This document shows, piece by piece, positions 19,991 through 52,269 of a stretch of 64,000 nucleotides of DNA. Made by a program: the position numbers and the translations under genes. The notes beneath the pieces are model-generated. The model was given only the letters and a program-made list of their open reading frames with translations. It was not told the origin of the DNA and did no database searches. The number at the start of each line of letters is the position of its first letter. Position 1 is the stretch's first letter. This DNA is from Amphiscolops sp. MND2022. Its lineage: Eukaryota. The stretch spans positions 56,482,001-56,546,000 of the forward strand of contig OZ076418.1 in assembly GCA_964187785.1 (NCBI GenBank). The letters are read 5' to 3'.

Positions 19991-20028
19991 CTCAAGATAG
20001 TCCCAAAGTTTTCTTTAAACAACGTTTC

Positions 20029-23000
20029 ATAACGAATCGGACCTCAGAGTAGTGTATAAACGTAAGTGTGTAAACATGAATAGAGCATCTTTTTGAAACG
20101 TTTTAGAGTTTATTTTCCGCCCAAAGATATTGGGGGGGGGGAAAATCATGATCTGTGATGCTCACATTTTTTTCAGTTTTTTTGACAAGACTCCTTTTAA
20201 ATGGAAATCCATAATCCAAGTCTCTCTTTAAAGCTCTGGAAAATTTTGATTTCTTTCAAAAACAAACTCTCTGTTGATGTAGAAATAGTAGTGAATTAGA
20301 TCGCTTTGGTTCCGCCAAATCTCTACGATTTCCGTCCACTTGACTATTTCAGTTACAATCAATCGGTAGGTCTTGGGTTCGAATCTTGCCTCCGACTGAT
20401 TTCTTGTGACAAGACTGAAAATATCCCGCTGTTTAGCTGGCGTCTTGTTTATCAACAACTCTGTGGCTCTTTTGTATGACATAGTGACCTTGGTGTGTCA
20501 CTTTCCCTCTCCATGTGGGTTGGTGTTTTGGTGCGAGTGCCAAATAATACGGTTGATTTCAGATTTGTTTTCATTGGTCAGCATTTCACGGTCTTCTCTT
20601 TCTTCACTGTCCGTCTGCACTCTGGTTCGACTTTCCTGTATCAAATCATGGTTAAGCCTAGTTTCCTTTTTAATAATGTCTGTTTTGTAGGAGACACAGC
20701 CTAAATTTCCGGTTTCTTTGTCAAATGGAAGTCGCTTGGGTGTTCTTATCGGTATATTCAGTTCGGTTGTTGCAAGACCATAATTTATAACTGTTCCCGC
20801 GATGAGGTCTTTCCTTCGGGTGGATTGGAGGCTTCGATGTTCTTGTGGCCTTCGCTAGTGGTATAGCAGTGGAACTCATCATCTGAGATGATGCTCAAAT
20901 CCAAGTCCACTGTTTTCTCCACAATTTTTCCCGCGACGTGAACTGTCTCCTTTGGTTGCGTGCTTTGTCTTTACGTTTCAGCCAGTCTTCGCGCGTTTCG
21001 TGATTTTCTGCGTTTGGTGGGTCCTTGGTTTTTCTGTAGTCGCAGGATGCGGGGGACTCCATGTCTTTTGAACAGGAGGGCTGTTCGTTGGCTGATTGTC
21101 GAGTGCCAATCTGTTTTGATAATGTTAAGGTGTCTGAAACGGTAGAGGATTGGATATCAGTTTTCGGTGGTAATTTTTTAAGTATGAACCGTTCAACTAC
21201 AATCAATTTTCTTTTCTGTTTGTCGTGAAGGTGTGATCATGCCCAAAATATCTATTTGTGGTTAATTGTCAAACTTGCTTTCCAGAGAGCTCTTTTTTTA
21301 AAAAAAGTAAAAGGATAATTGTTTACACATACCGTACTTGACGGATTCTTTGTTGTGTGAAGGTCAACCACCGTTTGTATTTCCGATCATTTGTTTTCTT
21401 TTTCGACATCACCAGATGGTCTGTGATATCGTCTGTAGAGTTCCGCGTTATGTACACGCGTTAAGTAGAGTTCCGCGTTATGTTTCTGCGGAATTGGCTG
21501 AAATAACAGTTTTTAGGTTAGTCAGTTTCGTTTTGGGTTTCCGTCCGAAGTGGAGTTCAACGGTGACTTTTGTCGTTCCGAATTGACAGTAAACCTAAGT
21601 ACGTATACTGCCTTATCTAGGCTGTCTCTTAGGATTCCATCCTCCAAACTTGCCTTTATCAGGTTCTTCAGTGATTGGATTGTTCTTTTGACCCATGCGG
21701 TGCCGATATGTTTGATGGGCCTTACTTACGAATTATATTGCTTTTTGTTACAGTAATTGTTTAATTCTTTTGATATGAATGCGCTGCCTCTATCTGTTTT
21801 GGTACCATCCCATAAATGTTAGTATATTCTTGTGAAAATTTTACGTTTTCGTGGTTAGTATTTTTACAATTTTTGCTACTGTCCGTCGACTGTTGCTGTC
21901 GATAGCGATTGTTTAAACGGAGAGCGTTCAACATGTTTGCTATGTAGAATCCTCGTGTAGACCACAGGCTTTAAAGTTTTGTCACCCGGAGTTTGTGGCG
22001 GATTTCTTTTTAATTTTTCAGTGCTAGGAATTTGGAATTCTAGGTTCTTACCGGTTATTGAGGCAAGCCGAGCAGGTTTTGGCTTTCCTTTCAATATCGA
22101 CTCGCACATTTAGCCACTAGACGATCATTACATCACCGCACATTTTGTTGACACCAGGGTGTCCGAAATGTAATGCGTTGAGAGCGGCGTAGCGTATTAA
22201 TGCGGTTGTTGACCACTGTAATACAACAGCAGTGGGTAAGTCTTTCGGCGACATGTTTGTCATCTTCAGAGATTTTTTTCAAGTTGTTGTTATCGTGGCA
22301 ACATTGTAGTTCAATTGATTTCGGATCTGCGACGCGGTTTATTTGATTAATGTCTCCAAGTTTAGCATAAAATCCAGTTCCACCGATATGAGGTTTTTTT
22401 GTTCCTAACTGCTAAATTTTCTGTAACTCGGTTGATTCGGACGTAACGTCCGCTATTTCTTCTATTGGTCAGTCTCGAAAGTTTTGTCCCGGAATAGACT
22501 GGTATGCGCCAGGTTCCTTGGTTGTTATTGGCTTTTTGGGAGAGGAAGAGACCGTGGATTCGGATTTTTGTTGGTTTCCAACGGTGCTTCCGTCGGAGTA
22601 TTGTCTCTCTGTGGGGTTGGGTCCCTGAAGTCTTTGAAATACCCACCACCGAGATGTGTAACTCGATGTTCTTCTTTCCGTTCGGGCGCAAATCGATGCG
22701 TTTTATCTGCTTGCGTTCGCCTTCTTCCGGTCTCTTTGGGATTAGGATTTGTCTATCATGTTTCTTGTGGTATTGGTAGCACATATTTCAAGAATTGGCA
22801 AGTTTATTGCGTCTTTCCAATAGCTCCTGCCTTTCCAGTTGTCTCTTCTTCTGATGAGTTGCATAAACCTATCGTCGGCGCCTCAGTGGTATTTTAATCT
22901 GTCGTCTTCATCTCTTGGAAATTTTGATTATGGGTGTTGTTGTTGCTGTCCATGTTTTCTGACGGGATATTTTTTGTTTCAATGCAATTTGACTGGTTAG

Positions 23001-24960
23001 TGGCCGAACGAGAGCTTGTGGGATAGTTGTTTGATATGAGGCAGCGCGTGCAAGTTTGCGTGGGTTGCGCATAATGCATGGCTGCATGAACAACTTCTGA
23101 GATGGTATGGCCCGGCCCTACAGTTTTTATATGGAATATTGTTTTTTGCTAACTTTATAGCCTTCATTTTTTAGTTTCATCAGTACAGATTCCAGTTTCT
23201 GGGTGTGTTTGTCTTTCGAGCCGTGTGTGACGACAATTATGTTGTCCAACCACACCGGGTGTTGCGTGACTGAGTGTTCGTTCATTTGCTCTTGGAATAA
23301 CGTGGATAAATCGGCTGGACCGTGAAATCCCTTCAAAAATTTGTAGTATCTGTTGTTTTTTCCCTGTAATTACAATGTTGCAGTGCTTGTTCTGGGTGCT
23401 AGTGTCATCCGTAGGCATAATCTCATTCTATTACAGATATCCAGATCGTGTCGGTGCTGTTCCTTGATAGATCTGCGAATATATGATTGAGTAGTTCATC
23501 CATAGTTGGCATGTGTGGTCTCTTTTTTTGCAGCTTTCGTTTAATTAACGGGTATCTAAAGTGATTTCGACGAGTTTGTACTTTGTATGTGATTATTACA
23601 AGTGATACAACGAAGTTTTCTTATATGGTTGCTTGTCTGTCGAAATGTGCGGAATTGGTTAGTCGGTTTATTCCGTTCTTTACGTCGTCTTGTAAGTGAT
23701 ATTGTATGGGTCGTGCTTTTTGTTGTATCGGATAGCATCCTGTTCGATTTCTTCATCTTCAGAGTTTGTGTCTTCCATGTACTTTATTGTTCTTTGGTTG
23801 TTGTTGTTTTGTTTGCTTCAACATACCCGGGTGAATATACCTAGTATTTGGCAGTTGTTTCATTTCGTGGATTTTGCCGGAGAATATTGCTGTGGTTTCC
23901 AGCTTTGTTGTCCGCAGAATCCACATTTTGTTCCTTTTTTGCGTAGATTTACCCTAATTGTTGTTTTCGTATTTTGTATTGTGGTATTCTTGGTTTCGTG
24001 TAATTTGTCTGTTCTGGATTGGATCTTGTTCAATTCCTTTGTCTTTTGCTAGTGCGGGGGTATCGTAGATTGTTCGTGTCGTCGGTCGTAGCTGGTTTAA
24101 GTTATTAGCTCTGGAGTTGTTCTGATGTTTAGTGTTTTCTCACGTAGTAACTTCTCCCGTCTTTTTTTGTCGGTGATAAAGGTGACAAATTTTGATACCA
24201 GTAGGTCTTCTTGTTTAATGTTTTTGAATTCGCAATTCATCTCTAGTGTTATTAGTTTTTTCCAATGATCTTCTGGTATTTCGTTGCCTTCTTGCTTTGC
24301 CCAGAAAAATACTCAGCGGCTGTTGTATGTGTTTCTCGTGGCCATGTAGGGTTCCCGGAGTAATTGTAGTAGTTTGTCTGTTTTGATTCTGTCTGGGTCC
24401 GTGTTAAAGTCACCTTTTGTGATTTTTTCGATGGATGAATGTCCGGCACCCCAGATAACTTTTTATCTGATTCGGGTTCTTTTTTGTCCCATGTTACACC
24501 GGAGGGTACTATTTAAAACAATAGTATCTGTTTGATAACGATGTTGTGGATTCTTTTAATGTGTTTCCACAAACTTTCGGTGTGAATATTTTCTTTCCGT
24601 CTAATCCGGTATCCTCCTGGTACGCTAATTGCATGTTGTTTGTTGTTATGTCATCCTCGGTGGTGTTGTCGGGATAGGTTTTTGTTAGAGGAAAAAATCA
24701 AAAGTTAAGTTAGAAGGTTGGATCTTGTTAATGCACCATGTTAAGATCTCTAGTTCTAGGTTTAAAAAGATGGTTTGTTGCATAATCTAATTCGCACTGT
24801 TCTATTTCAAATCAATCTTTGCAATGTAACAGGTCTCAGAGTAGTGTATAAACGTAAGTATGTAAACATAAATAGAGTATCTGACTGAAACGTTTCAGAG
24901 ATTGTCTATCAACAACTCTGTGGTGGTTCTTTTGTATGGCTTAGTGACTTTGGTATGTCA
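20029..24960 (-). mobile_element. Decayed, internally deleted Gypsy element C with both LTRs
   Basis: 5' LTR 24825-24960 (minus strand TGACATACC...CTGTTACA). 3' LTR ~20029-20500, preceded on the minus strand by polypurine tract GGAGAGGGAAAG (20501-20512). Degenerate RT LFQE.....WLDNIIV (23127-23336); integrase TDRGSAFISKE (~21770-21800). Confidence 0.75.
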
Positions 24961-27150
24961 CAAAGATGTAATATAATGATATTAATGATATTCAAATATT
25001 TGAAACAATTGATGATGAGCAGTTGGAAGATTTCGAAAAATAGTAGAAAAAAGTAGAAATACGTAAATTCAAGGATATTCAACCCTCTTCAAGCGTTGAG
25101 TTACTAGAAATTTTGAAAAAGAGTGAACCTTTTCGAATTTAATGGTGTATATTAGCCTACCGACTGCTAGTTGATGTGAAAAAACAACGCCAATGCATTA
25201 AATTCAGTAGACCTAAAGGTTCCTTTTAACATTAGGGATATTCCTAAGTGTGAAAAGGTGAAAAACTCGAATATAAGAGTTTTCGAGTTGAATAAAACAT
25301 TGACAACGTCAATCTAAAATGCTGAAAATTACTCAAAAGGTCAAATAGATCTCTTTCGTATGCAAATCATAGTTGTCTGATAACAAAGTTACTTTCACTG
25401 ATGAATGACCATTCGCACATCAAACATGTATGGTATGGAAAAGATGTGTAACAGCATTTATTTCACGAGACATCCTAAAAGATCACATAAACTGATGTGT
25501 AAAACATCAAAAAAATCAATCAGGTTTAGTGTAAAACCCCAGCTAATCTCAAGATAGTCCCATAGTTTCATTTATTCAACTTCCAATTGATGTTGGTTAT
25601 TAACTAATATCTCCATTTGGAAATCAGTTTTGCACAAATTTTGCAACAGACTGAGTAAAATGTTTTGGAAAAGGGTCTTCTGTATAGAAAAAGAAGCAAA
25701 TACACATTTCAAGAGAAAGATACAACTCCTTAAAGAAAACATTCCCAAGAAGTTGAAGCGTGTTGGCTTTGTTAAACCTTTTGTTTCCTCTTCGGGTGAC
25801 CAACCAATAGATGAAGTCCGAGATCATGATCATTCAATAAAAAATACAGAGCCGCGGCTCACAAAGTATGTAGTCTCAACTGCAAACAAAAGCGATCAAA
25901 CTTTGCTCCTAACTTTTTTTCCATAATTTTAAAATTTTGTTGCGATTACCATCTAGTCCTCGAGGAATTTTTTAGACAAGCGTTTATTTTTCAATTAGGA
26001 TCAAAAATAAAATCTAAGAGTTTGCAAAATTATGCATCGCATCTGTTGAGGTACTTTGTTTGGGATTTTTAGATTCACAAAGGTTTCTTTCTTCTAGTCT
26101 CCAAAAACTTATTGCATCTCTTGATACTGCGGACTCCAAGGGTTCAACTGATGATAAATTTTCCAAAAAGATAGACCTTCCATTTTAGAAACTAAATCTA
26201 GAAGATATGTACCGACCAGTAAATTTAACCGAAAAAGACTATTGGACGTCATTCAAACAATCCTCCTCATCTCAAGATGATATACAACGTACCCAAAAGG
26301 TGATCCATATGTACAGTATTACAGCAGGAAAACAAATGTGTTATACATGAATTTTGATGTTCTACAATTAGCTGATGTGTTAAGAAACTTTGTCACTACG
26401 AGTTCAAAACAAAACGGGATTTTTCCTTTGTATAATTAAACATTACCAGGTTATTCCTCGAAAGGTGGTTTGAAACATACCGAAATCAGGGAAGATTTTT
26501 GAAAGGTGAACAATTCTTAACATTATTGGAAAAACAAATCCTTGGAGGAATTTCCAGTGTAAAGGGCGATGTAATAGGTTTGTTGAATCGGATGCCCTCG
26601 AAATATCTTTCATATTGATGTCAATAATCTATATTGATGGACTATCAGTCAACCGATTTGTACTGGGGAGTCATTAAGTTTTTCAATGCCTCTGTGAACT
26701 CTGTTAAACAACCAGTTTACAAATTACAAACCAACCACCAAACAAGTACGAGATACATTATAGACTTCTCAAGTTTTATGTTAACATGAAGGTTGAAGAA
26801 ACATAAGTTCAATGTGACAATTTCAAACAATCATCTTGGTTAGCATCTTGGTTTGGAAGCGACTTATGCAACTTAAAGAGCAATGTTTTTTTTCGGGCAG
26901 TCAATGAAGAACGTTAAGGCAGAATCAATCTAGATTTCATATTTCACTCACAAATAGACGAAATAAAAGAAAGACCATCCAAAGTAATGTTCAAAGAAAT
27001 TGTGAACCACTATTGAACGTCAAACATTAATAAATTTGACAAATGAAACACAGTTTTTGAAAATCTTTTTTTCAAGGTCCTGTTTTTGAATTACGTAAAC
27101 TATTAATGTATGAGTTCCATTATCATACTTTAGAACAAATGATAGAAAAT
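24961..27150 (+). mobile_element. Polinton pPolB remnant, copy 3
   Basis: Collinear paralogue of copy 1, including gatcatgatcattca...acagagccgcggctcacaaagtatgta (EndoVII motif, ~25820) and gtaaactattaatgtatgag (KLLMYE, ~27095). Ends abruptly at the (TA)n run. Confidence 0.75.
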
Positions 27151-27207
27151 TCCATCATATATATATATATATAAATATAAATATATAAATCAATATAAAT
27201 ATTATCA

Positions 27208-27294
27208 TATAAATCAAGGACAAGTTGCTGGTGAGAAAAAATTGAAAAACTGTCCAAGTTGCCAAATCTTCAGAGCAACATGGACAGCAACTGG
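27208..27294 (+). repeat. Left terminal motif of the YR element; direct copy at 36010-36097
   Basis: tataaatcaaggacaagttgc...aaaaactgtccaagttgccaaatc...agcaacatggac versus tataaatcagtgacaagttgc...aaaaactgaccaagtttccatatc...agcaacatggac; roughly 75% identical by eye. Confidence 0.75.
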
Positions 27295-27915
27295 GACAAC
27301 TCCCAAAAAAAGTTTCCAGTGGGAATTTTTTTCCCAAAAAAGTATCTGGTAATCCCTGGGGCCATATATTTCGTTTTTTCATTGAAATAAAGTTCTCCGC
27401 CACCTACAAAAAACTGAAAAAATTGATTTTTTCCAACTTGCGGGGAGCTGGAGGCCGAGTTGCGGAAAAAAATTTCGCAAGATGGTCCAATTTTCAACGA
27501 AAAAAAAACATAATAAAAAACGTTGTTGCAGCAGCGGAAAGTAGGATTAAATCATAACTGGGCCTTTTGATAACCAAACAACCCGTTTCCACAAATTTTT
27601 CAGGAGGAAAAATCAATGACTACAAGAATACCCAACAATAATATTTTTTCCGCAACATGGAAAGCAAAATGGCCCTTTTGTGGTAAAAAAATGCACACGA
27701 ACAGTTTATAATGCAAAATGCAAAAATAAATACTGTTCCAAAAGTAACACTGAAAATACTAAATGCTGAAACAAAACCAGAATAATGCGAAAGTTCTAAT
27801 ATAGGCAGTTCTAGACTAGATATCTAATTGGTGTGGCTTCTGTAATTTCTAAAGACGCTGCGATCCTAAATTGTGTCGCTTCTAAATTGTGTCGGTTCTA
27901 AATTATGTGGGACCT

Positions 27916-30686
27916 CTAAATTGCGTGGCTTCTGCACAAGACGCTGCGACTCTGGGCAGCAGCCACCTGCTGCTTCAGTTCCTCGTAAGACCAGACAGAA
28001 CTGTTATGCATCTTCAGCTTGTTCTAAACACAAAACAAAGAATTAACAAAAGGTGCTCGAATCATGAAGAGCACTTTTTGAAAAAGCCCAGTTTTATGAT
28101 TTTTTCACATGGCAGACGCGTACAACACTGCAGTAAATTTGATGCATTTTTCACATTATTTTCATCAAAAGTGAATATTCAATTTTCCGGAAAGTTTGAT
28201 TGTTCGGGCAACATTCAGATATTTGACCCCCCCCATTGACTCCGAATAATCATCGTACATGTATAATTTTAATGTAATATTTTACCGCGCTGTGAGTCGT
28301 TTCTCTTTTTGCCTCCTTGCTGATTAAGATCTCCGCGACCGTCAGACAATTAGGGCTTTCGATATTATTCATCACCCACAGCAAGAAGATTGCTGGTAGC
28401 GAGAGATACCTCTCATCGGCACGCAAGGCTTGTTTCTTCTCCTGCATGTAGACATCTGCAATCAAATCTAAAACAAACATAAAGATTGCTATCCGAGGTT
28501 TCGATTACAGTCAGTGTCAAAAACACGTTTATTTGCTCAGATAGTTTTCCAGCTGGGTGGCGTCAAAAGTCCAACATGGAACAAAACTTTGTTTACCTTA
28601 CTCAGTGTTTTGTCCCACAGAAAGTTAGCTCCTCTTGCTTTGGAGTGCTCTGTAGTCCTCACAAGGTGAGGAACACCGCCTGGTAGGATCAATCCCTCAC
28701 CCTGGTTCAGCACAACCTTCCGGCAACTGAGCGTGGGATCTGATCCGAACACAACTTCGTTCCCGAAAACACTCAATCATGAATTTTAACCGTTTGTGAA
28801 AACACCTTACATTCTACACAAAATGTTAAGTAAGGTACATTTTAGTCGGGGTTACCGAAAAAATTATCTCAACGGAAAAACTGCAATAAATCAATAATAA
28901 GATTTGATTTTGTTTTTGAGGAAAGGAATAAAAATAATTCTCAATTTTTATACAAATATTTTTTACTGCCAAAATAATTCTGCAATGACTTTTCAGCACC
29001 TTTTCGTTTGCATAATTTTTGTGTGGATTGACTGAATTATAGCCGATAACCGTCTCTTACGTCCACTGCATTTGAAAGCCACCCAAGTACTCCTTTATAA
29101 CAGGCAACTCAGGCCGACAGAAACTGCAATTATTGCAATAATTCAATTTTGAGACAAATCTTTTGCAATTATTTGTTTTTAGTATGCAATTTGTGTACTT
29201 TTAAATTACGACTATATTTCAGTTAAATTGACAAAGATTGTCAACTTAAATTTTGCCTCGTTTGAAATCCGAATACTTCCTCATGTTCTCCGGAGTTGGT
29301 TCAATGACAAGCAACTCCTTTTGTCCTCGTACCAGCAAGTAAAACACGCTTGTACCAGAGAAATCCACGTGCCAAGGTGTTATTGCCCCTTTCTCGGTCA
29401 GCAATAAGTACTTGTTGAGCGAATTATGGTTGAGGCAACCAGGGAGCTTGTCCAGAAATTGATGGTAAAGGGACACCCCCTTTATCACTGCAGGCAGCTC
29501 AACGTCACAGAGAAGATCATCTTCTAAAAGAAACAAGAAACTTCTTCATCTTTAGATCTCAAAAAAAATGTTGATTGAACAAAAAAAATTAAATGTTTTG
29601 GGCAAAATGAACCAAAATGAGACAAACTTCAAACACCTATTTCTGTTCTTTCAATGCGAAAAGTGTCTAAAGTAGAGAACAATGTATTATGGGAAAACAA
29701 ACCTGGTCGAAAATAGTCGATGACGTTGAATGGATTTGGTCCATCCAAGGTGTCAATAAAATGTTGCAACGTCTGCGTCCTCATCTTCTCATTGCCTTCA
29801 TTGGCATAGTGTCTTACAGAAAGGGGATGGGAAATCATGTTGTTGGAGTTTCCCAGAGACAACAGACATTGCTTGAAAGGCTGACGAAGATATGAAGAAG
29901 GGATTGTGGAGCGTAGTCCTCTCAACTTATGTGGATCCTGCACTTTGACGACAGGAATATCGCCCGAGAGTTGGGGCAGCATATTTTCAACATCACTGGC
30001 CGACAGAACTTTTATAAACTCGATTGGTCTGGTAGAAGCTGTCCGATTTTGCATCATTTTAGTGCAACTCTCTGATAGGAAATTGAAGTAAAAGTCACTT
30101 TTGACAGTGTTTGCTGAGCTGGAGATTTCGACAAGTGTCAGCGGATCTCCAGTGACTGTGAGAAGTTGGGTGGCAGCAGTCGAAGCGGATGGAACTGGGT
30201 CCTCTAGGGCGGCAGAAAGGGCAAGGGATCTCTCATCTTCCGTCTCTCTGACTGCAGGGAGACTGTCTAAAGTGGGCTTCTCGTTCGCGATCAGAGTCTT
30301 GTTCACCTGATCCAAGGTCGGCATCCATCCAAGCCGAATCGAGTCGCGTTCAAGCAGCCTCGAAAAAGAATTCAGATGCCTCTCTGTTACTAGATTTGTC
30401 ACATTCTTCTCTGTGGGGAGCAAGACTTGTCCACGCGCTCTGACTTGTTGGTGATCTGTGCTCGACCATTGAAACTGATCGAGTGACAGAGTTTGCCCAG
30501 AGCGTGCTCCGACAGCCTCCATCTGGTTTCAAACACCTCCTCGGAAGTCCCATACCCGCAGAACATGCACCTGGTCCCGACTGGTTTCTCCATGCAGGAA
30601 CGTTTCTTCTGTTCATTATGCCTTTTGAGAGATCCACGTGTTGCAAACAGTTCGTTGCATACTAAAACTGGTTTTGAAATTAACAT
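27916..30686 (-). pseudogene. Spliced JmjC histone demethylase-like gene (KDM2/KDM7/PHF8 type) with N-terminal C2HC-like zinc fingers; at least one frameshift
   Basis: KYLLLTEKGAITPWHVDFSGTSVFYLLVRGQK and LNQGEGLILPGGVPHLVRT...GANFL match the KDM2/7 JmjC core with an intact H-x-D...H iron triad. Exons ~30662-29637, 29523-~29257, ~28770-28602, 28467-28286, 28023-27916. Introns 29524-29636, 28468-28601 and 28024-28285 are GT-AG and phase-consistent; the ~28.8-29.25 kb junction is uncertain. Confidence 0.85.
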
Positions 30687-31173
30687 ATGGTCATATTATC
30701 CACACGTAGCAAAAAGATGCGAAAACAAAACAACTTGGTCCTTCCATATTTTGTCGGATATAATAATACCACTATAGTTCACAGACCTCATACATGCAAT
30801 ACGAAAAAGTAACAAATCAGTTTTTCGTGCTGCGATTTCTCCAAAACAACTTCTTCATTGCAACTTGGCACCGATTTTTATAATTTGTAAACAAATTAGT
30901 TGCATTGGCCCACTCTGCAGCCAAAATACGAAATTTGTTCGTTTTAGTGTCAGAGTCGATGATTATGTGCATCGGTTGGGTGTCGATGGCGGCTGCCCGT
31001 AACGATTGCTATTCACGAGTCCGAAAATAATTTTCAATTCCCACGCGTCCGAATAATAGTTGAGCGGTCTCATTTCTAATTTACTGTAACAACCCGACAG
31101 TCATTACTACCCCATCAATTTTCAAGTTTTATTTAGATATTTTAAAATAAAACAACGTTTCATTTTGTTTTAA

Positions 31174-31235
31174 CAGTTTGTGTGAACTCCTTGTAATATA
31201 CACAATTTGTTAACCCACTGAGTAACTGCTATTTC
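31174..31235 (+). repeat. 62-bp inverted repeat, partner at 37995-38056
   Basis: 55/62 identical to the reverse complement of 37995-38056; a partial direct copy lies at ~31425-31490. Confidence 0.85.
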
Positions 31236-34200
31236 CAGCGTTACATTTTAGTTTTTTTCCATCCATAAGTTTTAGATATCATTCATGTCTTTAAACTTTA
31301 GATCTTATTCCCTTTAGATCGTATTACTGTCCACAAATTTCAGATCTTATTCCATTGAGATGTCGTTCATGTCATCCAATTTAAGGTCATATTCTCTTTT
31401 ATTTTTTTCGGAATTAATCGTATGTTTCATTATTTCATTAACAGTTTGTGTGAACGAGTTGTATTTTCCACAATGTGCTAAATTCTGAATTCATTCTCAA
31501 AAGATTCAGTCTTTACTAGGTACATCACAATTTCCACCATTTGTTCATCGCAAACTTCTCCTGAACATTTCCATTTTTATATAGAGTGAAACTAATTTTT
31601 AGGTCATATCAGCCCCCCATCTGTATAAGCCCGGGAGAGGGGGGCTTATACGTCGGATTATACAATAGTTTCGCGTTAATGTCATTAGCTCCTATGTTTT
31701 CATTTCTTTTTCTGCAACAACAAAAACAACTATTTGTTTTTCAGATACATCTCCGCTGAACATATCCACTATTTGTTTTACATGTAGGCCTAAATTTTGA
31801 AGTATAAAAGCAAGAAGAATATGAGGATTGAATCAACTTACCACTGCATTGAGGCCTGTTGTCTCGAAAAGGTGTGTCCATGTCGAATAATGTCGAGGTG
31901 TTCCGATTAACGAATAAATTCGAAAGTCACTCAATTCTTATGCTAAAAGAAATTCGAACTAAATTTCGAATATGGAATTAAAACCCAAAACAAAACTCCA
32001 GAGTCCTAAAGCAAAGAAAATACTTACTTTGGCAATAGGATTGTAACAGTAACAAAGGTGCAAAATCGAAAGCTCGTAGTCTACGTGTGAGAATAACACT
32101 AGGTAATACAGTCCGTACAGTAAACTGCGAATGTATAGTGACTCCATGTTTGTCAATATTAAACTAAGCGCAGCACAACATCTGCGGCAGCAATAGTCAG
32201 TATTTCACCAAGCGCAGCATTGTATTGACTAAGCGCAGCAATGTAATAATTGACGTACACTGAGTAATACAGCGTGTACATGTTCATGTATGTTGTGTAA
32301 TACTATGACCTAATATTGACAAGCGTTACAACATCTTTCTGAGAAGTAAAAACTATTGTTCAAAATTGAAAGTTTCTGAGAGGTCTGATGTAGATTTGAT
32401 ATAGCTCATGAATTTCTTTAGAGTATAGTTACCAGAAAAGGTTATGAAGGATGCTAGAATGGATGAATGATATGATGATAGCCTTTCATTTGCATACCAA
32501 GTCATGTTTTCCCCCCAAACTGCGCAGGGGGAGGGGGTTTGGCAGCAGAGATGGGGGTGGGGGTGGGGTTTGAATTATGTCTCTTTGAAGGAGACACAAG
32601 GTTCGAATACCGTTATGTCGACATCGTCTGCATTTTGGTCCAAGAAAATAATTGATGTCGACATCGAAATAATCATATCCCTATCCATTACATTGACTGT
32701 AAAAATTTATTATATACGAAATAACTTTTTCTTCCCCCCACATTTTTCGAGATGATGTTTTAGCAGAAAAGTATAATAACAAAGACATGAATAGAAACAA
32801 GAATCCTTTGATTTTAAATGTATTTACAGAGTGACAGTTTATAATTGAGATACTAACTTTGTCCACAATTTTTCCCTATTCTTCAAAACTTGTGGGGTGT
32901 TTATTCACGAACAAAATGTACTTACGGTTTCGCTAAGGGGGGGTTGACAGGGTTGTATAATAAAAAATTTATGTTAAAAAAATTTAAAATGAACGAAAGA
33001 AAATATATTTTTTGGGCTAAATCTAGAAATATTTTCAATTGAGCAAATTTTTTTATAGCGACACCACAATATAGCGACACCAGGAATAATTTACCATTAC
33101 ATTATGTCACTTCAAAAGCCGAACATCTCTTCAGTCACTCAAAATATGTACTACTATGATGAACAAGACATTTTGGAATACCAAACCTGTTGCGTCTCTG
33201 TGCAATTTTATTAACCCTGGGTGAAATGGCCTTCTTGGTATTAAGTCCACTGGGGACATATAGTGGGGAAAATATATTTCAACCCGGGGAGGTTGCGGGG
33301 GTTGTGGGCGGTTTGGAGTCTGTTGATAAGACACATGGTCCTTTTTCTAAGGATCATTCCTTTTTTAATGTTGATGCCGAAAAGTGACAATGAGTGCGTT
33401 GATGTTAATGTTAATGTGAGGTAGGTGAGTTCATCAATTTACAAATGCGGCTAACTTGAGTTCAAATCTTTGTAGAGTTTCGAAACTAACACTCAGGTGT
33501 TAAAATGAGTAAAGACTTTTTTTGCGAAGTTCTACAGTATCGAAAATTTTGCCAGTATTTTCGTTTGCTTCTCAAACTCAACTTACTCTCAACTTGAATT
33601 GAATTTCGAAAGCTCTCAACTTGAATTCTACAATGCCTTGAACTCGATCAGCTTCTGTGGCTGTTGCCCGCGTAACTCGTTCAACTCGGGACGTGAAAAT
33701 CCGAAAACTCCCAAATCCTGGCTCAAAACAGCCGACCAAAAAGACAAGCAACCTGGCGGTGGTTGGAAAACTTTCGTTAACAATTTCGGACGACTCTGTG
33801 TCTCCTTATCCAGTTTCGGCTGTGGAAGTCCCTACTGTGGAAATTCCTGCTGCAGAAGTCCCTACTGTGGAAATTCCTGCTGTGGAAGTCCCTGCTGTAG
33901 AGCTGTCTGATGTTGCTGGATCGGAAAAGAGATGTAAGTGATTCTTTACTTAAAACATTTTATTTGGTTTATCTTGGAAACATGCATGTAAAAAAAAGAA
34001 GATATAAATGTACATTTTCATGGAACTGTCAAAAAAGGACATATCTAAGGTTCTTAGTCCGCACTATAACACGCAACTACCAAACAAATACTTTTGGAGT
34101 AGTTTGAATACCAAAATACCAAAATGAAATAGCATTTAACTCATTGTGTAAAATAGGGGGTGTTTACACAAACTGATAATGAAGTGATAAACATCTATAA

Positions 34201-34460
34201 CAGTAACTTTCAAATAAAAAAAAATTCCGGTCGTTTTAGGCACCGGAACCGAGGAAGCAAGCGGTGCTGGAGCTGTGAAGAGTCCAATTGCAGTCCAAGA
34301 GTCTAATGAGCGGCCTCTGCCGGCTGCTGTATCAGAGCAAGTGATGCGTCCCGATACACTGCTGAGCCTAATAGATGCCCATCTGACGCACATAGTATTC
34401 GATTCTGAAACCCGAAAAACGCATAAACATTGTGAAGTCCCTTAATACATTTGCACGATA

Positions 34461-34949
34461 TTGGCGAAGCCACTTGGGATGGCCTTGTACCGGGAAATGA
34501 CGCAGTCTTACGGCACATCGTGTGACAGTGTCAGATACAAAGATTTCCTGAGCTACACGGGAATTGAATATGAGTTTGGAGTTTTTGCCAGAAAGAGGCT
34601 GCAAAAGGGCTCCAAGATTCAGGGCATTGATGGTTACTTTGCAGAGGCTGTGGATAGTGCGCCCACAGTTTCTCTCTTTGGATCTGAGGGAAAATCCAGA
34701 AAGGAGCGAATCATGCTGGGACCAGCAAGTTTTGTTAACCACAGCTGTCAGCCTAATGATGTGTATGTTTGCGGAGGTCCGACAAAAAACCGAAGCAATT
34801 TGCGGATTGAGGCCATTAGAAACATTGAAGAAAATGAAGAAATTTTTGTTATATATGGAACAAATTTTTTTGGCAACAACAACGAAGAATGCGCCTCTTA
34901 CCCGGGCAGCCCATTGAAGTCCCTGTATGTGTTTCTGCTGTTGATCTGA
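34461..34949 (+). CDS. SET-domain exon, SUV4-20 (KMT5B/C)-like
   Basis: MLGPASFVNHSCQPN and YGTNFFGNNNEEC match SUV4-20 signatures (LGPAAFINHDCRPN; YGDGFFGENNEFC). The in-frame upstream ...KTHK resembles the SUV4-20 pre-SET THK. The post-SET CxCxxC is not intact. Confidence 0.85.
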   Translation: MAKPLGMALYREMTQSYGTSCDSVRYKDFLSYTGIEYEFGVFARKRLQKGSKIQGIDGYFAEAVDSAPTVSLFGSEGKSRKERIMLGPASFVNHSCQPNDVYVCGGPTKNRSNLRIEAIRNIEENEEIFVIYGTNFFGNNNEECASYPGSPLKSLYVFLLLI

Positions 34950-35162
34950 ACTCCAGCCATGTGAACCTAACAAGCGATGTGTCAGCAACAGCTTCTTACA
35001 ACTGAATATACGCTAACCAAGAGTAAGTATACGTATTGCAATAACGTTTTTCTCATTAATTTAGAAAACTATTGGCTGTGAACATTTTACCCAAAAACAA
35101 TTCCACATAACAACTTCTGTATAATTTGGATTGATTACACAAAACGTTATTTTTTGGATTAG

Positions 35163-35585
35163 GCAGCACAGTGAAGTCCCTGAATACGTTCCTGCTGTTG
35201 GTCTGAACTCCAACCATGTCAACCTAACAAGCGAAGTACCAGCAGCTGATGTCTCTGAATGCACTTCTGCTGTTGGTGTGATCCCCGGAGAACAGAAGGT
35301 TAAAAAACTCCAACAGACCAAATATGGCGAAATTACCCAGTGCCTGATCTGCGAAAAAACAGCGAAGCGGATATATAAGCACTATGTCCGTTCTCATCCA
35401 GAGCTGACTGAGAAGGACCTTCGAAATTTGAAGGACTTCATGAGAACCCGAGGTCGGCATGAAAATAAAAAAATATTTTATTGCGAGGAGCACGATCGTC
35501 GATTTCTCAACAAGATGGATCACAACAGACATTACAATTGCGACCTCAACTCTATCTTCGTGGTTGCTAACCACACTAGTAAAAG
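35163..35585 (+). CDS. C2H2 zinc-finger exon
   Basis: CLICEKTAKRIYKHYVRSH and CEEHDRRFLNKMDHNRHYNC. Confidence 0.65.
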
Positions 35586-36157
35586 GTATTTTTTGTTGTT
35601 ATCAAATTAGCGTTGTAATTATCGTTGTATTAATTAGTTTTTACGTGTGATGGTTTCCAAACACACAAAATGTTTATTAGGTAGTGAGTGGTAAACGCTA
35701 GAATATCAAGTTATCAGTTGCCGTTTTTAGAACTCTGCCACTCGAGTTGCGCGCGAAATTGCGCAATATTCATCTGCCGAGGGAGAGTCACATGTCTCTG
35801 GTGACTGAGTTCGTCAACCACGAGTTTCGAGAAAGAGGCTCAGGGTTGTCCGATGAAAGCGTCTTCGACGTGCGAGGACGCGACTCGCTGAAGAGCTTCC
35901 TGGCAATTATTTATGGGACACGCTCGCGTTAACAGAACCAAAAGCGCTGATTCCAGCTATTGAAAGGTATTCATTTATTTTCTATTTAATATTTAATGAA
36001 ATAAAATAATATAAATCAGTGACAAGTTGCAACTAGGAAAAACTGGAAAAACTGACCAAGTTTCCATATCCCCAAAGCAACATGGACTGCAGAATGGATC
36101 AACCACATAAAGACCTGTTGGTCAGAAACTGTTCTGAGTTTTGCATTTTTTTTCTAG

Positions 36158-36922
36158 AGTTGAGCTGAGAAGACAATGGGAGCCGAGCACAACAAACTGG
36201 TACATGTCCCAGTTTAAGGTTTTTCTTGATTACTGCCACACGTACGAGAAAAGGCAGATGAAAAAGGAATCCTGCCTTTCCACCATGCAGAAGGCGCTGA
36301 GAGATGCGAGAAGAGAATTTGCGCCCAATCTTGCACGTTCTTCCAAAGAAAGCAAGAAAGTTCTCCCGCGTGCCCAGTCTGCATCAAGTCACAAAGAGGC
36401 AGCTGCAAGTGATTGAGGTGCTGGAGCGGGACTTGGAAGAGAAAAACTTGACGACGACTACCCTGAAAGCTCTCAACTTTTTCCTGCTTCAATGTCGCCT
36501 CAACGTCACGCCTGGTCCCATATTGAACGTGACGTGGGAGTGCTTCGACTCCCACTTGAAAGCTGGACACGTCTATGAAACCAGTGACCACAAGACGGGG
36601 AAGTTTTATGACGTTGCTGTCAGGATTGAGGCCGACCAAATCACGCTCTTAGACGAAATGAGGGAAAGGATGAAGAGCGAGTACCCCACAATGCCTTCCC
36701 TCACCAAGTCCCAGCAGGAGACAAAAATGTCCTACTTAATCCGAGACACTTTCACGGAACTGTTCCAGGACGATCCAAACTTCGTGCGATATAATGCGGC
36801 GAACTCAACACGAAAATTCTGGGAGATGCACATGGCTGGGCTGGAACTGTCGCAAAATCACAAAGATGCCCATTTAGCCCAAACCGCACACTCAGAGATC
36901 ACGGCCAGGAAACACTATCAAA
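36158..36922 (+). CDS. Tyrosine recombinase (core-binding plus catalytic domain) exon
   Basis: Core-binding WEPSTTNWYMSQFKVFLDY, then after a frameshift LNVTPGPILNVT (box I), DHKTGKFY (catalytic K), NSTRK (x-x-x-R) and HLAQTAHSEITARKHYQ (H and catalytic Y at 36916-36918). Confidence 0.8.
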
Positions 36923-38849
36923 GTAAGTATATTGAATATTTTTTATCCACTTGGATATGTGGTTGGATGTTTTCCTGCTTCGAACATTTTTTAAACAAAA
37001 CCTGTGTGTTTAACTTTTTGTGTTTTTACTTCTTGTCTGCACAAAATTTTAATGCTTTTTAGGAGTCACTGAAGCAGATCGAAATGCGGTGCTGATTATC
37101 TACAGCAACACACTGCGGACAGTGGCAGAGGAGCCTGAGCAATTGCCGGAGGAAGAAGAGAGCACTGAGGAAGAGGTCGAGAAAGAAAACCCGAGACCTA
37201 AAAACTACCAGCGGACGTCATTAAATTCTACCTTTGACCTCGGAAGATCGGCATTGAAGCGTGCAAGAAATTTGGAAGACGACGACGACAGCAGCAACGA
37301 CGACAATTCATACGACAGCCTCGACAGCATTGATTTTCCGCAAACCCCGAGAACCCCGAAAACACCTAAAACCTCGAACACCCCGAAAACCCCAAAAACT
37401 CCAAAAACTTCGAACACCCCTGACATTCTAGAGAAAAAACGAAAATTATATTTTAAAAGCATGAAGCATTTCAGAAATACTAAAGATCCTTGGACAGAAG
37501 AAGAAAGAAGTGTTTTCCATATGGCGTTACCGACAATCCAAAAGTCAGAAGTTGAAGCTAATTTGAAGGAATTTGAACCAGCAAAGCAAAGTGTCTGCTC
37601 ACAAGATATACCGTAAGGTGAAGGCTGCCTGGATGAATGTTAACAAGAAGTTCCCATGCCAGTAAAAATTATTCAACTTTATTCAACAAAACCGCAGAAA
37701 CTTTTTTAAGTGTTATAAACGCTTCTCATTTTCATTTTTGAAAAATTTATTCATTTTTTCCAAATCTTTTAAATGGCTTTCAGTCGTATGAAACGCATGT
37801 TTTCAAAAGCTGACTCTTTTATACTTTGAGTATTATACCTTAGATAGTTAGATTGACAAGATTTTAAAAACTTGAATATTGATGGGGCGGTAATGGCAGA
37901 AGGTAAAAATTGACAAAAGTCGTGGAATGAATTTAGAAAATCTACAATATTACTGGTAAAAAAACTCTAAGTCGAAGAAATAGAAGAAAGTGGCGAAATA
38001 ATAGTTACTCAGTGGATTAACAAATTGTGTAAAAAAGAAGGAGTTCACACAAACTGCCAATAAAAGCAGCATAGTGTTATTTTCAACCCTTTCACCAAAA
38101 TTTAACACTAAGAGGGATAACCTGCTTTCTGAAACAGTTTTGGAGCTTTTTGCAAACATTTTGCAAAAAATTTTCATTTTCCCTCAAAATTGCTAGAAAT
38201 CTGTCCGACTTGCGAAAAGTTGTCCATGTTGCATGTTTGGTTATTATTAGTATTTATTAGTAAAATTATGCAACTTGGAATATCGGTTATTAAGGGTCAC
38301 GCAAAATGGTCCGATTTCTAACAAATTTTACGCATTTTGTCCCTGATTTTTTTATATATGTATATATATATGTATACGTTTGTTTGCAACATATAGCCCT
38401 GTAGCAGGGGTGATCGGGTCTTTATTGTTGTTAGGTTTTAAAGTGAATGTCACCCTACACCCTACTCCGTATTTTTTTTCTTGATCAGCAAATCCAAACA
38501 ACCTTTCATCGTAATTCTCACAAAAGTGACCATTTTTCTTTTGTTTCTTAGTTCGTGTCTTCTTGTACTTTTTGATACGTTAAATCCATACAATAACGCA
38601 CTTGTTTGTTGGTTGGAAGTTGAACAGTTTTCCTTTCCAGCTGACGACATGTCTAACAAATTTTTTGAATTGACCAATACCTTTGGTCAACCAATGTTAA
38701 TTTTAATTGCTTTCATATAATCCACGTTGTTAAAGTTTTAATTTATTTGTTTTTCTGAACGTTTGACAAACTTCTAAACAGTTTTCTTTGTGATTCCAGT
38801 TACTTTACCAAACTCAATTTTGTTTTCTTTGCATTTTTCGGGAACTATA

Positions 38850-43734: not shown

Positions 43735-44469
43735 TGTAACGGAAAGTGCTTAGCGTTTATCCACTACGCAGGGCGGAGGAACTGAAGCCATGGGTGATGA
43801 TCCGGGACTGATCGCCATGATTCCAGTTCATTTTGTCCTCCTGGGGAGTGCCGGTCCCGAGAAGGGAGAACCGTCTCTAAGGTTGCTTTCTGACCGGTTC
43901 CGGTCTGTAACTGCTACCAGTCACATGAAACACGCTTTTTTCCTCGTATCCACTGTGCAAACAGCCTGTAAAAATTGGGTTAAGCTGCATAGAACTGAAT
44001 TGAACGGTCCAGATGGAACTCCATCATTAATAACAATAACATTACCAGAGGTAGCTCTCGAGTGAAGAATTCATCAAACAACTAATTAACACATCAAAAG
44101 GGTACAAAAATCCAGTTTGGCATGTCTAAAATCACTCTGGGTGGCATGGCACTGGTTCTTGGGTTCCACACAACCCCGGGTCCGGGCACTGCAATCACTC
44201 GGACATGCTGAATTCGTCTGATTTTTGATGTATACCGTGGGAATTAGCGCATAGGCTTACGATTTTTCGGTTTCGTGACATTGTACGCACTTCTCTTGTC
44301 GGTATGTCACTTTTTTCCGCCTCGCGGGATTGTCGATCCACGCTCTCTATAATTTGTGCGGGACTGGTACATCGTGAACACATGTTTGAGGGCCACGTCA
44401 CTTTCGAACAAAATTTTCAGAAAATTGTCAAACGTCAAAAATTTTTGTCGGTCACAGGGTGCCGTTACA
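43735..44469 (-). repeat. 3' LTR of Gypsy D (735 bp)
   Basis: tgtaacggaaag...gccgttaca; the minus-strand polypurine tract AGGGAGTGGA abuts it at 44470-44479. Confidence 0.95.
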
Positions 44470-45238
44470 TCCACTCCCTGGGCTCCTGGCTTGTCGTCCC
44501 TGGCAAGCATCGGGGGTTTTCGTTTGAAGACAGGACATTGCGCATGCTGTGGATACATCTTGAAGTTGATGTGCCGTTGCATAGAACAGCCACTCTTGAG
44601 ATGTTGCCTTTTCGGATCTTATCGTAATTTTACTACAAGACCTAATATTTTTTACAAAAAAATTGAGACGTTCGTAGCACCAGCTCGAGAGGTTGAGCTT
44701 CTAAAGTGGCTTAAGCCAATTTTAGCACCGGTGAGGACTAAAATGTCTTTTGCGGCAAGTACCTTGCTAAAATGTCTTTGTCTCATTTTTGTAGAGATCC
44801 GTTTTTTGCAGGTTTCGTTTAAAACATCGTCTCTCAATAGCGTATAAGCTCGGTTTACAAACAGACAGTCGATAGAGTGTACAAGACTCAGCTAAAGGGT
44901 ATCAATTGGAGTTTAAAAGATTATTTTTTGGCGACTATGCCTTTGCACCTGGTTTTCTCCTTTTGACAACGCCGAAGGCGTTTATTGAAAGAAAATTTTG
45001 TTAGCTTGATCATTTCTTTTCTCATGAGCTTTGTTATCGTAATGCTAGCACAAGGGGCAGGCGCACTCTTTGGCCATACACCCGAGGCGTAAATCTAAAT
45101 CAAAAGGTCTAACTAACAACAGTTAACTAAAATTGCACCAATTGAATGCAGCACCGTAAGAAGGCTATGAAGTTTTTTTGGAGTTTTCATTGCGGAAGGC
45201 CCTGCTTCGTTTGATTGGTTGATAAAGTTTCAAGTCCA

Positions 45239-47313
45239 TCAAAACGTCAACAGTTTATTGAATGGCAGATTTGTTCCTGCTTTGAAGGCTTTCCTGCTTC
45301 GAGGAGAAACTTCTCTTGGGGGTGAGGCATCGCTCACTGACGCTCGTCGGACTGGCGAAGGCACAACAGTTTCGGCAACGGTATCAATAGTGAGGTCTCC
45401 GATAGGTTCTGCCAGCTCTACATTTGGGGTCAGCTCTGCTGCTTGTTCTCCAGAAGGACTAGGAGTTACAGGCATAGCTGTGTTATCTACTGTAACTTTC
45501 GCTTCATTGGTATTAGCTTCTACCGTCAATGGTTGCTCCAATGACATCGCCATAGTGGGAGGCTGTAACGATTGTGGCGCATATCGAGCAGCGCGTTCTT
45601 CTTCAGCGCGGTGATTGGCTGCCAAGGCTACAAGCTTTGATACCCAGCCAGCTTGCTTCCAGAGTGCGGAAGCTTGTTTCCACACGTCGAAGTTGCTAAA
45701 TTCCAGGTTGAGGCATTCTTCGTCCCACTCGGCGCGCATTTCTGCGCCTAATACCTGGTTCACTATGTCCAATAAAGACAATGGCATATCTCCGGACATG
45801 GTCATGCGTCCTTGTGGGCGCCATGCAGGCTCATACTGCGAGGGACCATTCTACGCGACAGGTTGCGATCACGCACCAGTGCCGCCACGTGAATCCATTT
45901 GGGTACATTGGTCACGTCTAAGTGCCGTAATTGATGATCCAGCAACTCCTTCCCGCGTCCAATTGGGCGTGTGCGAGGGTGGGCTACTGGTTCTTTCCAG
46001 TAGCGATTGGGTACCTGGATAAATTTGAACTTGTAGTCCGAACGGACATGCAGGCTAAGCTGCAGGCAGGGATTTATCATTTTCTTGATAGAGTCCGACG
46101 ACCAAGGAAACCGGAATGGTTGTCCATTTAAGTCGACAGGAGCATTAAGCCAATTGATGGGACCGTATTCCCTTGGTAAGACGACGACTTTGCGCGAGCG
46201 GGCACGGACAACACCCATCATATTTTCTTCCACTTATTGCTCAGTCTTGACAGTGGTGTACGCTTGAGGTACTTCGCCACTGTATGTTTCTCGTATCATT
46301 TGGGCATAGCTCATAGGCGGGCTTCCTTGAAGGTACGTGAAAATGGATACCGTTGCAACATGCACTGCTAGAGATACTGGCTTGGTTGGATAACGTAATA
46401 GTCCAAGAGCTCCAAACATTGGGATTAAAACGGGAGCTACACTGGGACTAAATCCTCTACTTCGGCTAGCGTCAGGTCAGCCAATTGTTGCGGCATCGGA
46501 AAGTCCGGGTTCTCACGAGGCAACTGCGCGTCTGGATCGTGTAGGGGTTGAGCTTGGTCTGCTCCTACAAATAATCCTAATGCATAGATCAGTGTGGAAT
46601 AGAGCCAGTGTTGCACGGAAGCTCTCATTCGGAACAAATGCTCTGTGTAGTTGTGTCTGTTTTGTGCGAAGAGAATATCTCCACACCCAAGCAAGCTGGT
46701 TAGTTTTCCTTGAGCTAAGACTAGGTACGTGTAGAATTCTAGCACTCCACCTGACGTGACTAAGTCTACGACGATGGCTAGCGGTCCGGCTACGAACTTA
46801 GTAGGCCCAAGGGCTAGCGCAAGGACTAACACTTCATTTATTGAAGTTTCTTTGAGTGTTTCGGTGAGTCTTTGCAGCTGGTCGTCTGTCAGGTTGAACT
46901 CGCCTGCGACGACGTCCATAATGCCAACCTAATCCAAAACTTGTCAGCAATGCTTGGAAAGAGACAGATAGGGCTCGTGCGATCATTTCTAGAGTGACTC
47001 TGGCCAGGCAATCATTGTACCAATCCCCGTAAGTGGCCACTTTGGCTTGAATCAAATTGCTAAGGGTCACGGCTTCATGGGCTACAATGTTCCTAAAGCC
47101 CAGTGGCATTTTGATAAATTCTGTGTTGTCGGCGAATTGGATCTGGGGAAGGGTCCTTTCGACCTCTCGGTTAAGTGGCCATCGATTTAATTGATCCCAG
47201 ACTGCTTCAAGGTCCGCCTTGATGGTGTTGGGATGTGGTTCGCGCACCAGCCAGTTGTACCTGCGCATATTTTCACGCTCTGCAATGGGCCTTCTGAGCC
47301 AATTCGTTCTCAT
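45239..47313 (-). pseudogene. Extra ORF3 of Gypsy D at the env position, function unknown, in five fragments
   Basis: Abutting or overlapping minus-strand ORFs 46834-47313, 46437-46919, 46234-46419, 45802-46233 and 45239-45805 between integrase and the polypurine tract. Confidence 0.55.
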
Positions 47314-52157: not shown

Positions 52158-52269
52158 AGGAGAATAGGTTGTGAGTGTGTCAGAGTCCCCTGGGCGTACA
52201 ATTCTTTGGGACGGGGTATTTCCACACGTTTGTATAAGGTTTGTAGTTCAACCCACAGTTTGGCTAACG

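Follow-up and report, generated by a model that had tools for sequence, protein, structure and literature searches.

A probable fossil DNA transposon of Amphiscolops with a candidate tyrosine recombinase, a SET domain and a JmjC gene

The subject of this study is a window of 64,000 nucleotides from Amphiscolops sp. MND2022 (contig OZ076418.1 of assembly GCA_964187785.1, positions 56,482,001 to 56,546,000 of the forward strand). Within this window, a block of 11,141 bp (positions 27210-38350; all positions are those of the window unless a locus is named) carries two divergent genes, both of them broken. The gene on the minus strand encodes a JmjC domain of the kind found in histone demethylases. 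The gene on the plus strand would encode a protein that joins a SET methyltransferase domain, zinc fingers and a candidate tyrosine recombinase (YR). The coordinates of the genes, their parts and the features at the ends of the block are collected in Table 1. The gene models consist of stop-to-stop reading frames and splice signals, predicted from DNA alone. Sister copies of the block were sought by protein search in the ENA assembly ERZ25074608, which is the window's own assembly (the contig of the window is ctg184083); in what follows, loci carry the prefix L, and open reading frames (ORFs) or their products the prefix P.

Table 1. Features of the block and of its immediate borders, in window positions (TRF, Tandem Repeats Finder)
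Feature	Position	Strand	Basis
TA-rich microsatellite beyond the left end of the element (possible target or crossover region)	27157-27209		TRF
Left terminal inverted repeat, 19 nt	27210-27228	+	Homology to L008 and L010 begins at the same base
Left subterminal region, array of ~11-nt GCAANNTGGNC-type motifs in both orientations	27210-27700		Motif search
JmjC gene, KDM2/7/PHF8-like, broken	28253-30695	-	PDB sequence matches and sister ORFs
Internal diverged end copy, inverted, directly upstream of the JmjC gene and pointing into it	30864-30881	-	Sequence comparison
Region separating the two divergent genes, with tandem, hairpin and nested dispersed repeats	30882-33641		Repeat analysis
SET-zinc finger-tyrosine recombinase gene, broken	33642-37616	+	Order of parts as in P0045, L001, L011, L012 and L013
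SET domain exon, SUV4-20/KMT5-like	34446-34946	+	Pfam SET, 3.9e-10
Exon with two C2H2-like zinc fingers	35125-35607	+	Weak Pfam zf-C2H2_ZNF462_11, 2e-4
Canonical GT-AG intron holding the internal left-end copy	35967-36157	+	Donor and acceptor conserved in L004
Core-binding and catalytic domains of the candidate tyrosine recombinase	36158-36922	+	Alignment of relatives and sister model
Canonical GT-AG intron, in phase with the next exon	36923-37062	+	Splice-site reading
Acidic, low-complexity C-terminal exon ending in a stop codon, with conserved W-T-x-E-E	37063-37616	+	Sequence comparison
Right subterminal motifs and right terminal inverted repeat (38332-38350)	38222-38350	-	Motifs and homology limits
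Right TA-rich microsatellite, outside the element	38351-38376		TRF

In the plus-strand gene, the SET exon matched KMT5B/SUV420H1 (2.3e-12) and KMT5C (8e-11) among the PDB sequences, with the H3K36 enzymes as the next family (7e-3), and the NHSC and C-terminal motifs of SUV4-20/KMT5 proteins are visible in it. The predicted SET domain is therefore placed nearest to KMT5B/C, with a putative specificity for H4K20. The exon with two fingers is conserved at four more distant loci (L001, L011, L012 and L013), and within the recombinase region the recombinase-like exon occupies 36301-36922. The W-T-x-E-E stretch of the C-terminal exon is common to P0002, P0005, P0032 and P0045; this exon looks SANT/Myb-like by eye, with no support from Pfam. 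Tandem repeats within coding sequence (33819-33898 and 37338-37420, with units of 15/30 nt and 9/36 nt) and a duplicated segment of 83 nt (34905-34987 and 35162-35244) would provide the SET-YR protein with low-complexity linkers between its domains.

The 5' exon of the minus-strand gene holds a C2H2-like finger and a long region specific to the family. The gene also has two exons with one half of the JmjC domain each, and a further exon (28253-28504). The half-exons at 29249-29545 and 28540-28776 match consecutive stretches of KDM7 in the PDB sequence search (residues 171-226 at 1.5e-7 and residues 230-283 at 1.3e-3, respectively), and the next PDB matches are KDM2A and PHF8. Pfam, applied to single exons, missed the JmjC domain that the PDB search recovered. 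The sequence contains the HxD...H iron ligands, and the sister ORFs P0142-P0151 share 65-92% identity with the window gene. No PHD, CXXC or F-box domain was found in the gene. The predicted demethylase is of the KDM2/7 (JHDM1/KDM2-KDM7-PHF8) type. A first-pass annotation of this DNA had already described a KDM2/7-like JmjC gene on the minus strand and, on the plus strand, a SUV4-20-type SET domain, zinc fingers and a YR; the PDB matches to KDM7, KDM2A and PHF8, the Pfam and KMT5B matches, the fingers and the recombinase evidence given below all agree with it. Its picture of two divergent, intron-containing genes also stands as regards the layout and the GT-AG introns. It does not stand for an intact copy, as the genes of the window are degenerate.

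The identity of the recombinase called for evidence of several kinds. A HMMER search against 1.84 billion representative proteins returned 81 YR relatives at E < 1e-3, and none of those looked up bears a functional name. In an alignment of 29 relatives, the residues R, H-K-T-G, R-K, H and Y were conserved at 90% or more (R141, H168-K169-T170-G171, R245, H271 and Y280 in the numbering of P0134). The pattern R..HKTG..R..H..Y is thus nearly invariant, with a residue other than His at the first His position of the tyrosine-recombinase pattern. Pfam Phage_integrase (PF00589) matched two of the 29 relatives, at best with 4.3e-5, and Phage_int_SAM_1 (PF02899) matched three; DUF3435 and DUF3504 matched none, the latter at E up to 1. 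We made an AlphaFold2 model of the sister ORF P0134, which is uninterrupted and 91% identical to the window (pLDDT 72, pTM 0.64). When the model was compared with the PDB by Foldseek, the best 26 matches were all tyrosine recombinases (probability up to 0.98), among them XerA, Cre, Flp, lambda Int and other integrases. Taken at moderate confidence, the catalytic pattern of the 29 relatives and the fold matches of the sister model suggest a very divergent tyrosine recombinase with a core-binding and a catalytic fold, which is the class that had been assigned to this protein at the outset. No DDE transposase, reverse transcriptase (RT) or other recombinase domain was found among the ORFs tested inside the element.

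To count the breaks in the window copy, a frameshift-aware alignment against uninterrupted sister-copy ORFs was used. It revealed two frameshifts and no stop in the first exon of the JmjC gene, one frameshift and one stop in the SET part, two to three frameshifts and no stop in the core-binding/YR part, and one frameshift and no stop in the C-terminal exon; in the last two parts, some events may fall in intron read-through of the reference ORFs. Between subfamilies, the ratio of nonsynonymous to synonymous substitution rates (Ka/Ks) was 0.1-0.3 for the JmjC core and the SET domain, against about 1 for copies of the same family, most of which are decaying; the ratio is noisy on short exons, and only the between-subfamily contrast was used. 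This contrast would fit an active lineage under selection whose copies, once inserted, decayed neutrally. The window copy is a fossil no longer capable of the activities proposed below. More complete relatives are L004 and L008, with long ORFs, and the young second family described below.

Two TA-rich runs, called by TRF at 27157-27211 and 38353-38376, border the block. The first-pass annotation had seen the block between these runs, together with inverted end motifs; the block and the motifs remain, and its bounds (27157-38376) have to be moved inwards to 27210-38350 because they took in the flanking microsatellite. The left end (27210-27228) agrees at 15 of 19 positions with the reverse complement of 38332-38350, and L008 has an identical 19-mer at both of its ends. 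With up to three mismatches, the left-end 18-mer (27211-27228) has only two other matches in the window, at 36013-36030 on the plus strand and at 38332-38349 on the minus strand, which makes three matches in 64 kb versus 0.15 expected. The motif GCAANNTGGNC has nine matches in the window versus 1.6 expected, and seven of the nine lie at the two ends and in an internal copy of the end. The left subterminal region is 87-88% identical to L008 and L010. At the right end, homology to L004, L006, L008 and L009 halts at 38350, and the flanks beyond differ.

Other repeats are found inside the element. A palindromic hairpin of about 48 nt (TTAAC..TTGTGT..ACACAA..GTTAA) occurs at 28786, 31170, 31438, 34136, 35107 and 38017. 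All six copies lie within the element, in introns or between the genes, and the exact pattern has three matches versus 0.39 expected; an inverted pair of 71 nt (31165-31235 and 37995-38065) is part of this motif. The region between the genes, which is partly missing in the subfamily copies L004, L008 and L009, also holds nested short dispersed repeats (32592-32700 and 32768-32879), which recur at 63339-63441 and 60495-60608. The stretch with the nested repeats (32592-32879) is missing from the same three copies.

The search for sister copies gave ORFs of both genes in ERZ25074608 with 64-92% identity, and the fetched loci share 76-93% DNA identity with the block. At least five separate insertions can be told apart, namely the window, L004/L008 as one locus, L006, L009 and L010. 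Wherever a copy extends to an end, its homology breaks off at the same bases, and the sequence beyond is unrelated. L008 is a full copy. L004 is 97.7-99.5% identical to it, flank included, and is either the same locus or a recent duplicate. L006 starts at a contig end and continues to the right terminus of the element, and L010 covers it from the left terminus to a contig end; L009 is truncated on the JmjC side, and L005 and L007 are partial. The truncation of L009 (1180-1325 of that locus) falls within the first exon of the JmjC gene at a point that adjoins a (TA)n run, and could be secondary recombination at a microsatellite. The family of mobile YR elements proposed in the first-pass annotation, with multiple copies, coinciding ends and different flanks, is thus borne out by L004/L008, L006, L009 and L010 and by the distant second family. 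The same annotation had regarded a lack of linkage between the JmjC and YR genes in other copies as fatal to its proposal, and the two were linked in every long copy seen.

These copies could also be read as a host cluster of KMT5-like and KDM7-like genes that has spread by segmental duplication. Both enzymes have ordinary host counterparts, and the flank shared by L004 and L008 points to at least one duplication or haplotig. However, the ends are sharp, inverted and coinciding, and the flanks are unrelated at five loci. The SET gene is fused to a recombinase, the copies decay, and a second family follows the same plan. We therefore regard this explanation as largely refuted and extremely improbable.

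Every end seen adjoins an AT-rich microsatellite of the type (TA)n, (TAT)n/(ATT)n or (TAA)n. The window copy has (TA)n on both sides. Outside the left end of L010 there is (TA) ~38, outside the right end of L009 (TA)9 and more, and outside the right end of L006 TAATATATAT. L008 has (ATT)n on its left and (TA)4(TAT)n on its right. The elements either insert into AT microsatellites or carry a microsatellite at their tips. A paralogue of the left flank within the window (15124-18047) was considered as an empty site and rejected: its homology stops 18 nt short of the (TA)n run, and it gave no blastn or tblastx match to the right flank.

A second family was found in ERZ25074608, represented by L001 (element at about 5981-17392 of that locus, with (TAA)n on both sides). 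Its YR is about 47% identical to that of the window family. A SET ORF, a finger-like sequence and a YR ORF of 481 aa are followed downstream on the same strand by the JmjC gene, all within the ends; in the window family, the JmjC gene differs in placement and orientation, being upstream and divergent. A JmjC exon of the second family matched PHF8 at 5e-11. Two copies of this family (14243-17455 of L001 and 13501-16735 of L010) are 98.4% identical. They end at the same base and continue into (TAA)n of differing length and then into different flanks. The copies of the second family are far younger than those of the window family (98.4% versus 76-93% identity), and the one in L010 has a copy of the window family as a neighbour, only about 4 kb away. 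For the window family itself, at least nine further contigs carry both its YR ORF and its JmjC ORF, the clusters being paired by shared contig sizes.

The wider relatives share a part of this plan. P0045, from a JGI metagenome, holds SET domain, fingers, core-binding domain and YR in a single ORF of 895 aa. The same SET-zinc finger-YR order was found at L011 (GenBank metagenome contig JAAUXW010332506.1), at L012 (another ENA assembly, ERZ25071359) and at L013 (a third family in ERZ25074608). A JmjC gene was seen only in the window family and the second family, and none was found within reach of L011, L012 or L013, suggesting that the SET-YR fusion is the conserved core and that the JmjC gene is a long-standing companion in part of the lineage. 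The pairing of a histone-methyl writer with an eraser, as claimed in the first-pass annotation, thus applies to two families and does not extend to these three loci. L012 has a second partial recombinase-coding stretch (11709-12194 of that locus) directly after the first, and the ends of its family were not found from its single copy. A scan of JGI metagenomes with P0045 gave no match, and a scan with alignment A2 gave one locus of 3.3 kb.

We also considered that the terminal inverted repeats (TIRs) might be recognised by an unlinked DDE transposase (Tc1/mariner- or PIF-like, with a TA or TAA target), so that the element was moved in trans. The YR-like protein would then serve in the resolution of replication products or in DNA binding, or have no role. 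TIRs together with TA- or TAA-rich insertion sites do fit DDE families, the YR matches known enzymes weakly, and in the Tec elements of Euplotes TIRs occur together with both a DDE transposase and a YR. On the other hand, the ORFs tested within the element gave no DDE domain, the YR is the only protein common to all related loci, with a nearly invariant catalytic pattern, and the two families, which have different ends, each retain their own YR. Movement in trans by a DDE enzyme consequently seems unlikely to us.

Copies of the ends also occur inside the element. A module of about 100 nt from the left end is found again at 35999-36112, where it keeps the orientation of the left end and about 80% identity to 27197-27289. 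It sits within a conserved intron, and the intron-located copy was found in every sister copy reaching the region (L004, L005, L006, L008, L009 and L010). Fuller copies of the JmjC-side module are present at the corresponding place in L004 (3826-3936) and L008 (9928-10038), and L004 has another internal copy at 9892-9998. In the sister copies, the ORFs 3' of both internal end copies start within the module, with the same first residues. In the second family, three direct and one inverted copies of the right end form a foldback in the JmjC gene region (14842-15044 of L001). The internal copies may be promoter modules, internal recombination sites, self-derived miniature insertions or traces of a composite origin. 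The first-pass annotation had named an unrelated dispersed miniature inverted-repeat transposable element as a possible source of the end motifs; the unrelated element was not borne out, and the motifs do recur inside the block.

A composite origin would join a small JmjC element (27210-30881) to a YR-core element (35999-38350), each with end-like sequences as its borders and the two bracketing the SET-zinc finger part. The two would move as one in this genome only, and the JmjC gene would be the passenger of a non-autonomous element of its own rather than an integral gene. The internal end copies lie at exactly the positions that such an origin implies, and the sister ORFs after both of them begin within the module. 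The different position and orientation of the JmjC gene in the second family and its absence from L011-L013 point the same way. Yet P0045 has SET domain, fingers and YR in one uninterrupted ORF, a conserved canonical intron encloses the internal end copy, and every copy that is long enough shows the same co-linear layout. Among the copies examined, neither the JmjC unit nor the YR unit was seen on its own. On balance, we hold a composite origin to be quite unlikely.

Altogether, the block is probably the fossil of a DNA transposon of autonomous type, belonging to a eukaryotic YR lineage not described before. This interpretation draws on the five loci with unrelated flanks and coinciding ends, the 98.4% identical pair of the second family, the statistics of the TIRs, the clustering of the motifs, the residues and fold of the YR, and a gene content kept across families whose YRs are about 47% identical. 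Several observations weigh against it. The window YR exon (36301-36922) has no Pfam or PDB sequence match, the family profile found no match among PDB sequences, and the Foldseek matches of P0134 have E values of about 0.02 and TM scores of 0.35-0.44. The window copy is broken and has a substitution at one conserved catalytic position of the YR, the copies of the same family mostly decay at Ka/Ks of about 1, and the gene models are predictions from DNA sequence. TIRs beside TA-rich DNA are seen more typically in DDE transposons than in Cryptons. The microsatellite may belong to the element rather than to the target, and neither an empty site nor a circle junction was found among the sequences examined. 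Finally, the JmjC partner is missing at L011-L013.

The surroundings of the element bear on one further explanation, namely a virus-like origin, with SET, JmjC and integrase proteins encoded by a fragment of a Polinton or of an endogenised giant virus. SET and JmjC genes occur in large DNA viruses, and Polinton-like flanks had been reported in the first-pass annotation, in which the block interrupts Polinton DNA. That report was not upheld: among 30 flank ORFs we found no Pfam family match and no Polinton hallmark, and the gene tables of the window's contig, read for window positions 19629-47062 (clear of a run of N at 58648-59038), contain no Pfam family, leaving room only for very decayed remains. 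The only rve domain in the window belongs to the long terminal repeat (LTR) retrotransposon at 43735-58355. Moreover, a scan of viral contigs returned no YR relative, and the unit is 11 kb long with ends of its own. A viral source is, in our judgement, very improbable.

As for the neighbours, the retrotransposon to the right is Gypsy-like and lies on the minus strand. It has LTRs at 43735-44470 and 57612-58355 that are 94% identical, and zf-CCHC, RVT_1 and Integrase_H2C2+rve domains. Its GC content is about 0.5 versus 0.35 around it, and the run of N lies just beyond. The left flank is a unit repeated three times (15124-18047, 19198-20023 and 24843-27139; 69-85% identical) with no recognisable protein domain. 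A stretch of 4.8 kb (20043-24903) with an AT skew of -0.25 to -0.36 and minus-strand ORFs that have no Pfam match is bracketed by direct repeats of 69 nt (20043-20111 and 24835-24903, 88% identical) and may represent a further inserted element. One ORF nearby, with a faint hint of 7tm_1, has no PDB relative, and no tRNA or Rfam family was found in the 64-kb window.

If the element is indeed a YR transposon, a mechanism can be suggested for its movement. The YR would bind the inverted terminal sites and the subterminal motifs and excise the element as a circle. On the circle, the joined ends would form a site resembling lox or FRT, in which a TA-rich spacer separates two inverted arms of 19 nt. 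Once this site exchanged strands with a (TA)n or (TAA)n tract of the genome, the insertion would be conservative, leaving microsatellite on both sides and no classical target-site duplication. The steps that concern chromatin are more speculative. The SET domain tethered to the recombinase might methylate or bind H4K20 at donor or target nucleosomes, the JmjC enzyme might strip repressive methyl marks from the element, and the internal end copies upstream of the YR exons and the JmjC gene might act as promoter modules or internal recombination sites. Editing of chromatin by the element at its own sites is something that we purely infer. In its fullest form, the proposal is of a new superfamily of YR transposons in which an H4K20 methyltransferase built into the recombinase and a KDM2/7 eraser write and erase marks at their own ends or targets, with lox-like integration into AT microsatellites and internal ends used as promoters or rearrangement sites. 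We offer this fuller scheme tentatively and think it rather doubtful as a whole.

Compared with known systems, the element has features of several. Cryptons are eukaryotic DNA elements with a YR as their only recombinase, some of them with an extra GCR1_C domain or C48 peptidase, and a circular intermediate with recombination at a short shared sequence has been proposed for them (PMC3212892, PMC13465315). They have been described as lacking TIRs and having direct repeats of 4-6 bp, with no partner other than a peptidase or a DNA-binding one, and the YR of CryptonA matches DUF3504 (PMC3212892). Like Cryptons, the window element has a YR as its sole recombinase, with no RT among the ORFs tested. 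Unlike them, it has 19-nt TIRs, subterminal motif arrays and microsatellite flanks, and it departs from CryptonA in that DUF3504 matches none of the 29 relatives. Starships are fungal elements that are mobilised by a YR and carry other genes, some with TIRs (PMC13465315). They span tens to hundreds of kb, occur only in Pezizomycotina and have a DUF3435 captain and variable cargo, whereas the window element measures 11 kb and has a fixed gene set and no DUF3435 match. As in Cre/loxP and Flp/FRT, its ends, if joined, would make two inverted arms around a short AT-rich spacer, and Cre, Flp and Xer are the best structural matches of the P0134 model. However, Cre and Flp serve plasmid or phage maintenance at fixed sites, whereas the partner of the joined site proposed here would be a genomic microsatellite. 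The DIRS, Ngaro and PAT elements are likewise eukaryotic, YR-encoding and equipped with unusual terminal or internal repeats; they encode RT and RNase H, unlike the tested ORFs of the window element, in which no RT was found. Some DIRS elements encode a methyltransferase-like domain. Tec1 and Tec2 of Euplotes are bounded by TIRs, insert at TA and encode a tyrosine recombinase, and they differ from the window element in their DDE transposase, their long TIRs and their lack of histone enzymes.

An association of mobile or viral DNA with an epigenetic enzyme, or the fusion of a SET domain with a transposase, has precedents in the fungal KDZ/Plavaka transposons with their linked TET/JBP genes, in vSET from chlorella viruses and in SETMAR. 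These involve a DDE recombinase or none, and other enzymes. To our knowledge, in none of them does a YR element bring together a writer and an eraser of histone methylation. The first-pass annotation had likewise named no described family with such a pairing, in line with our full-text search of the literature (Repbase and Dfam lying outside the search), which found no paper describing a YR element or Crypton with a SET or JmjC domain. The rarity of the family, with 81 relatives among 1.84 billion representative proteins, may be the reason that it escaped description.

Transposons read chromatin, for instance through chromodomains, and are silenced by chromatin. If the interpretation is right, a transposon lineage that stably encodes a writer fused to its recombinase, together with an eraser, would represent a new strategy in the contest of mobile DNA with host silencing. 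The eukaryotic YR DNA transposons would then extend beyond Cryptons and Starships to elements with inverted terminal sites and microsatellite targeting, and domesticated fusion genes with SET or JmjC domains could derive from such elements.

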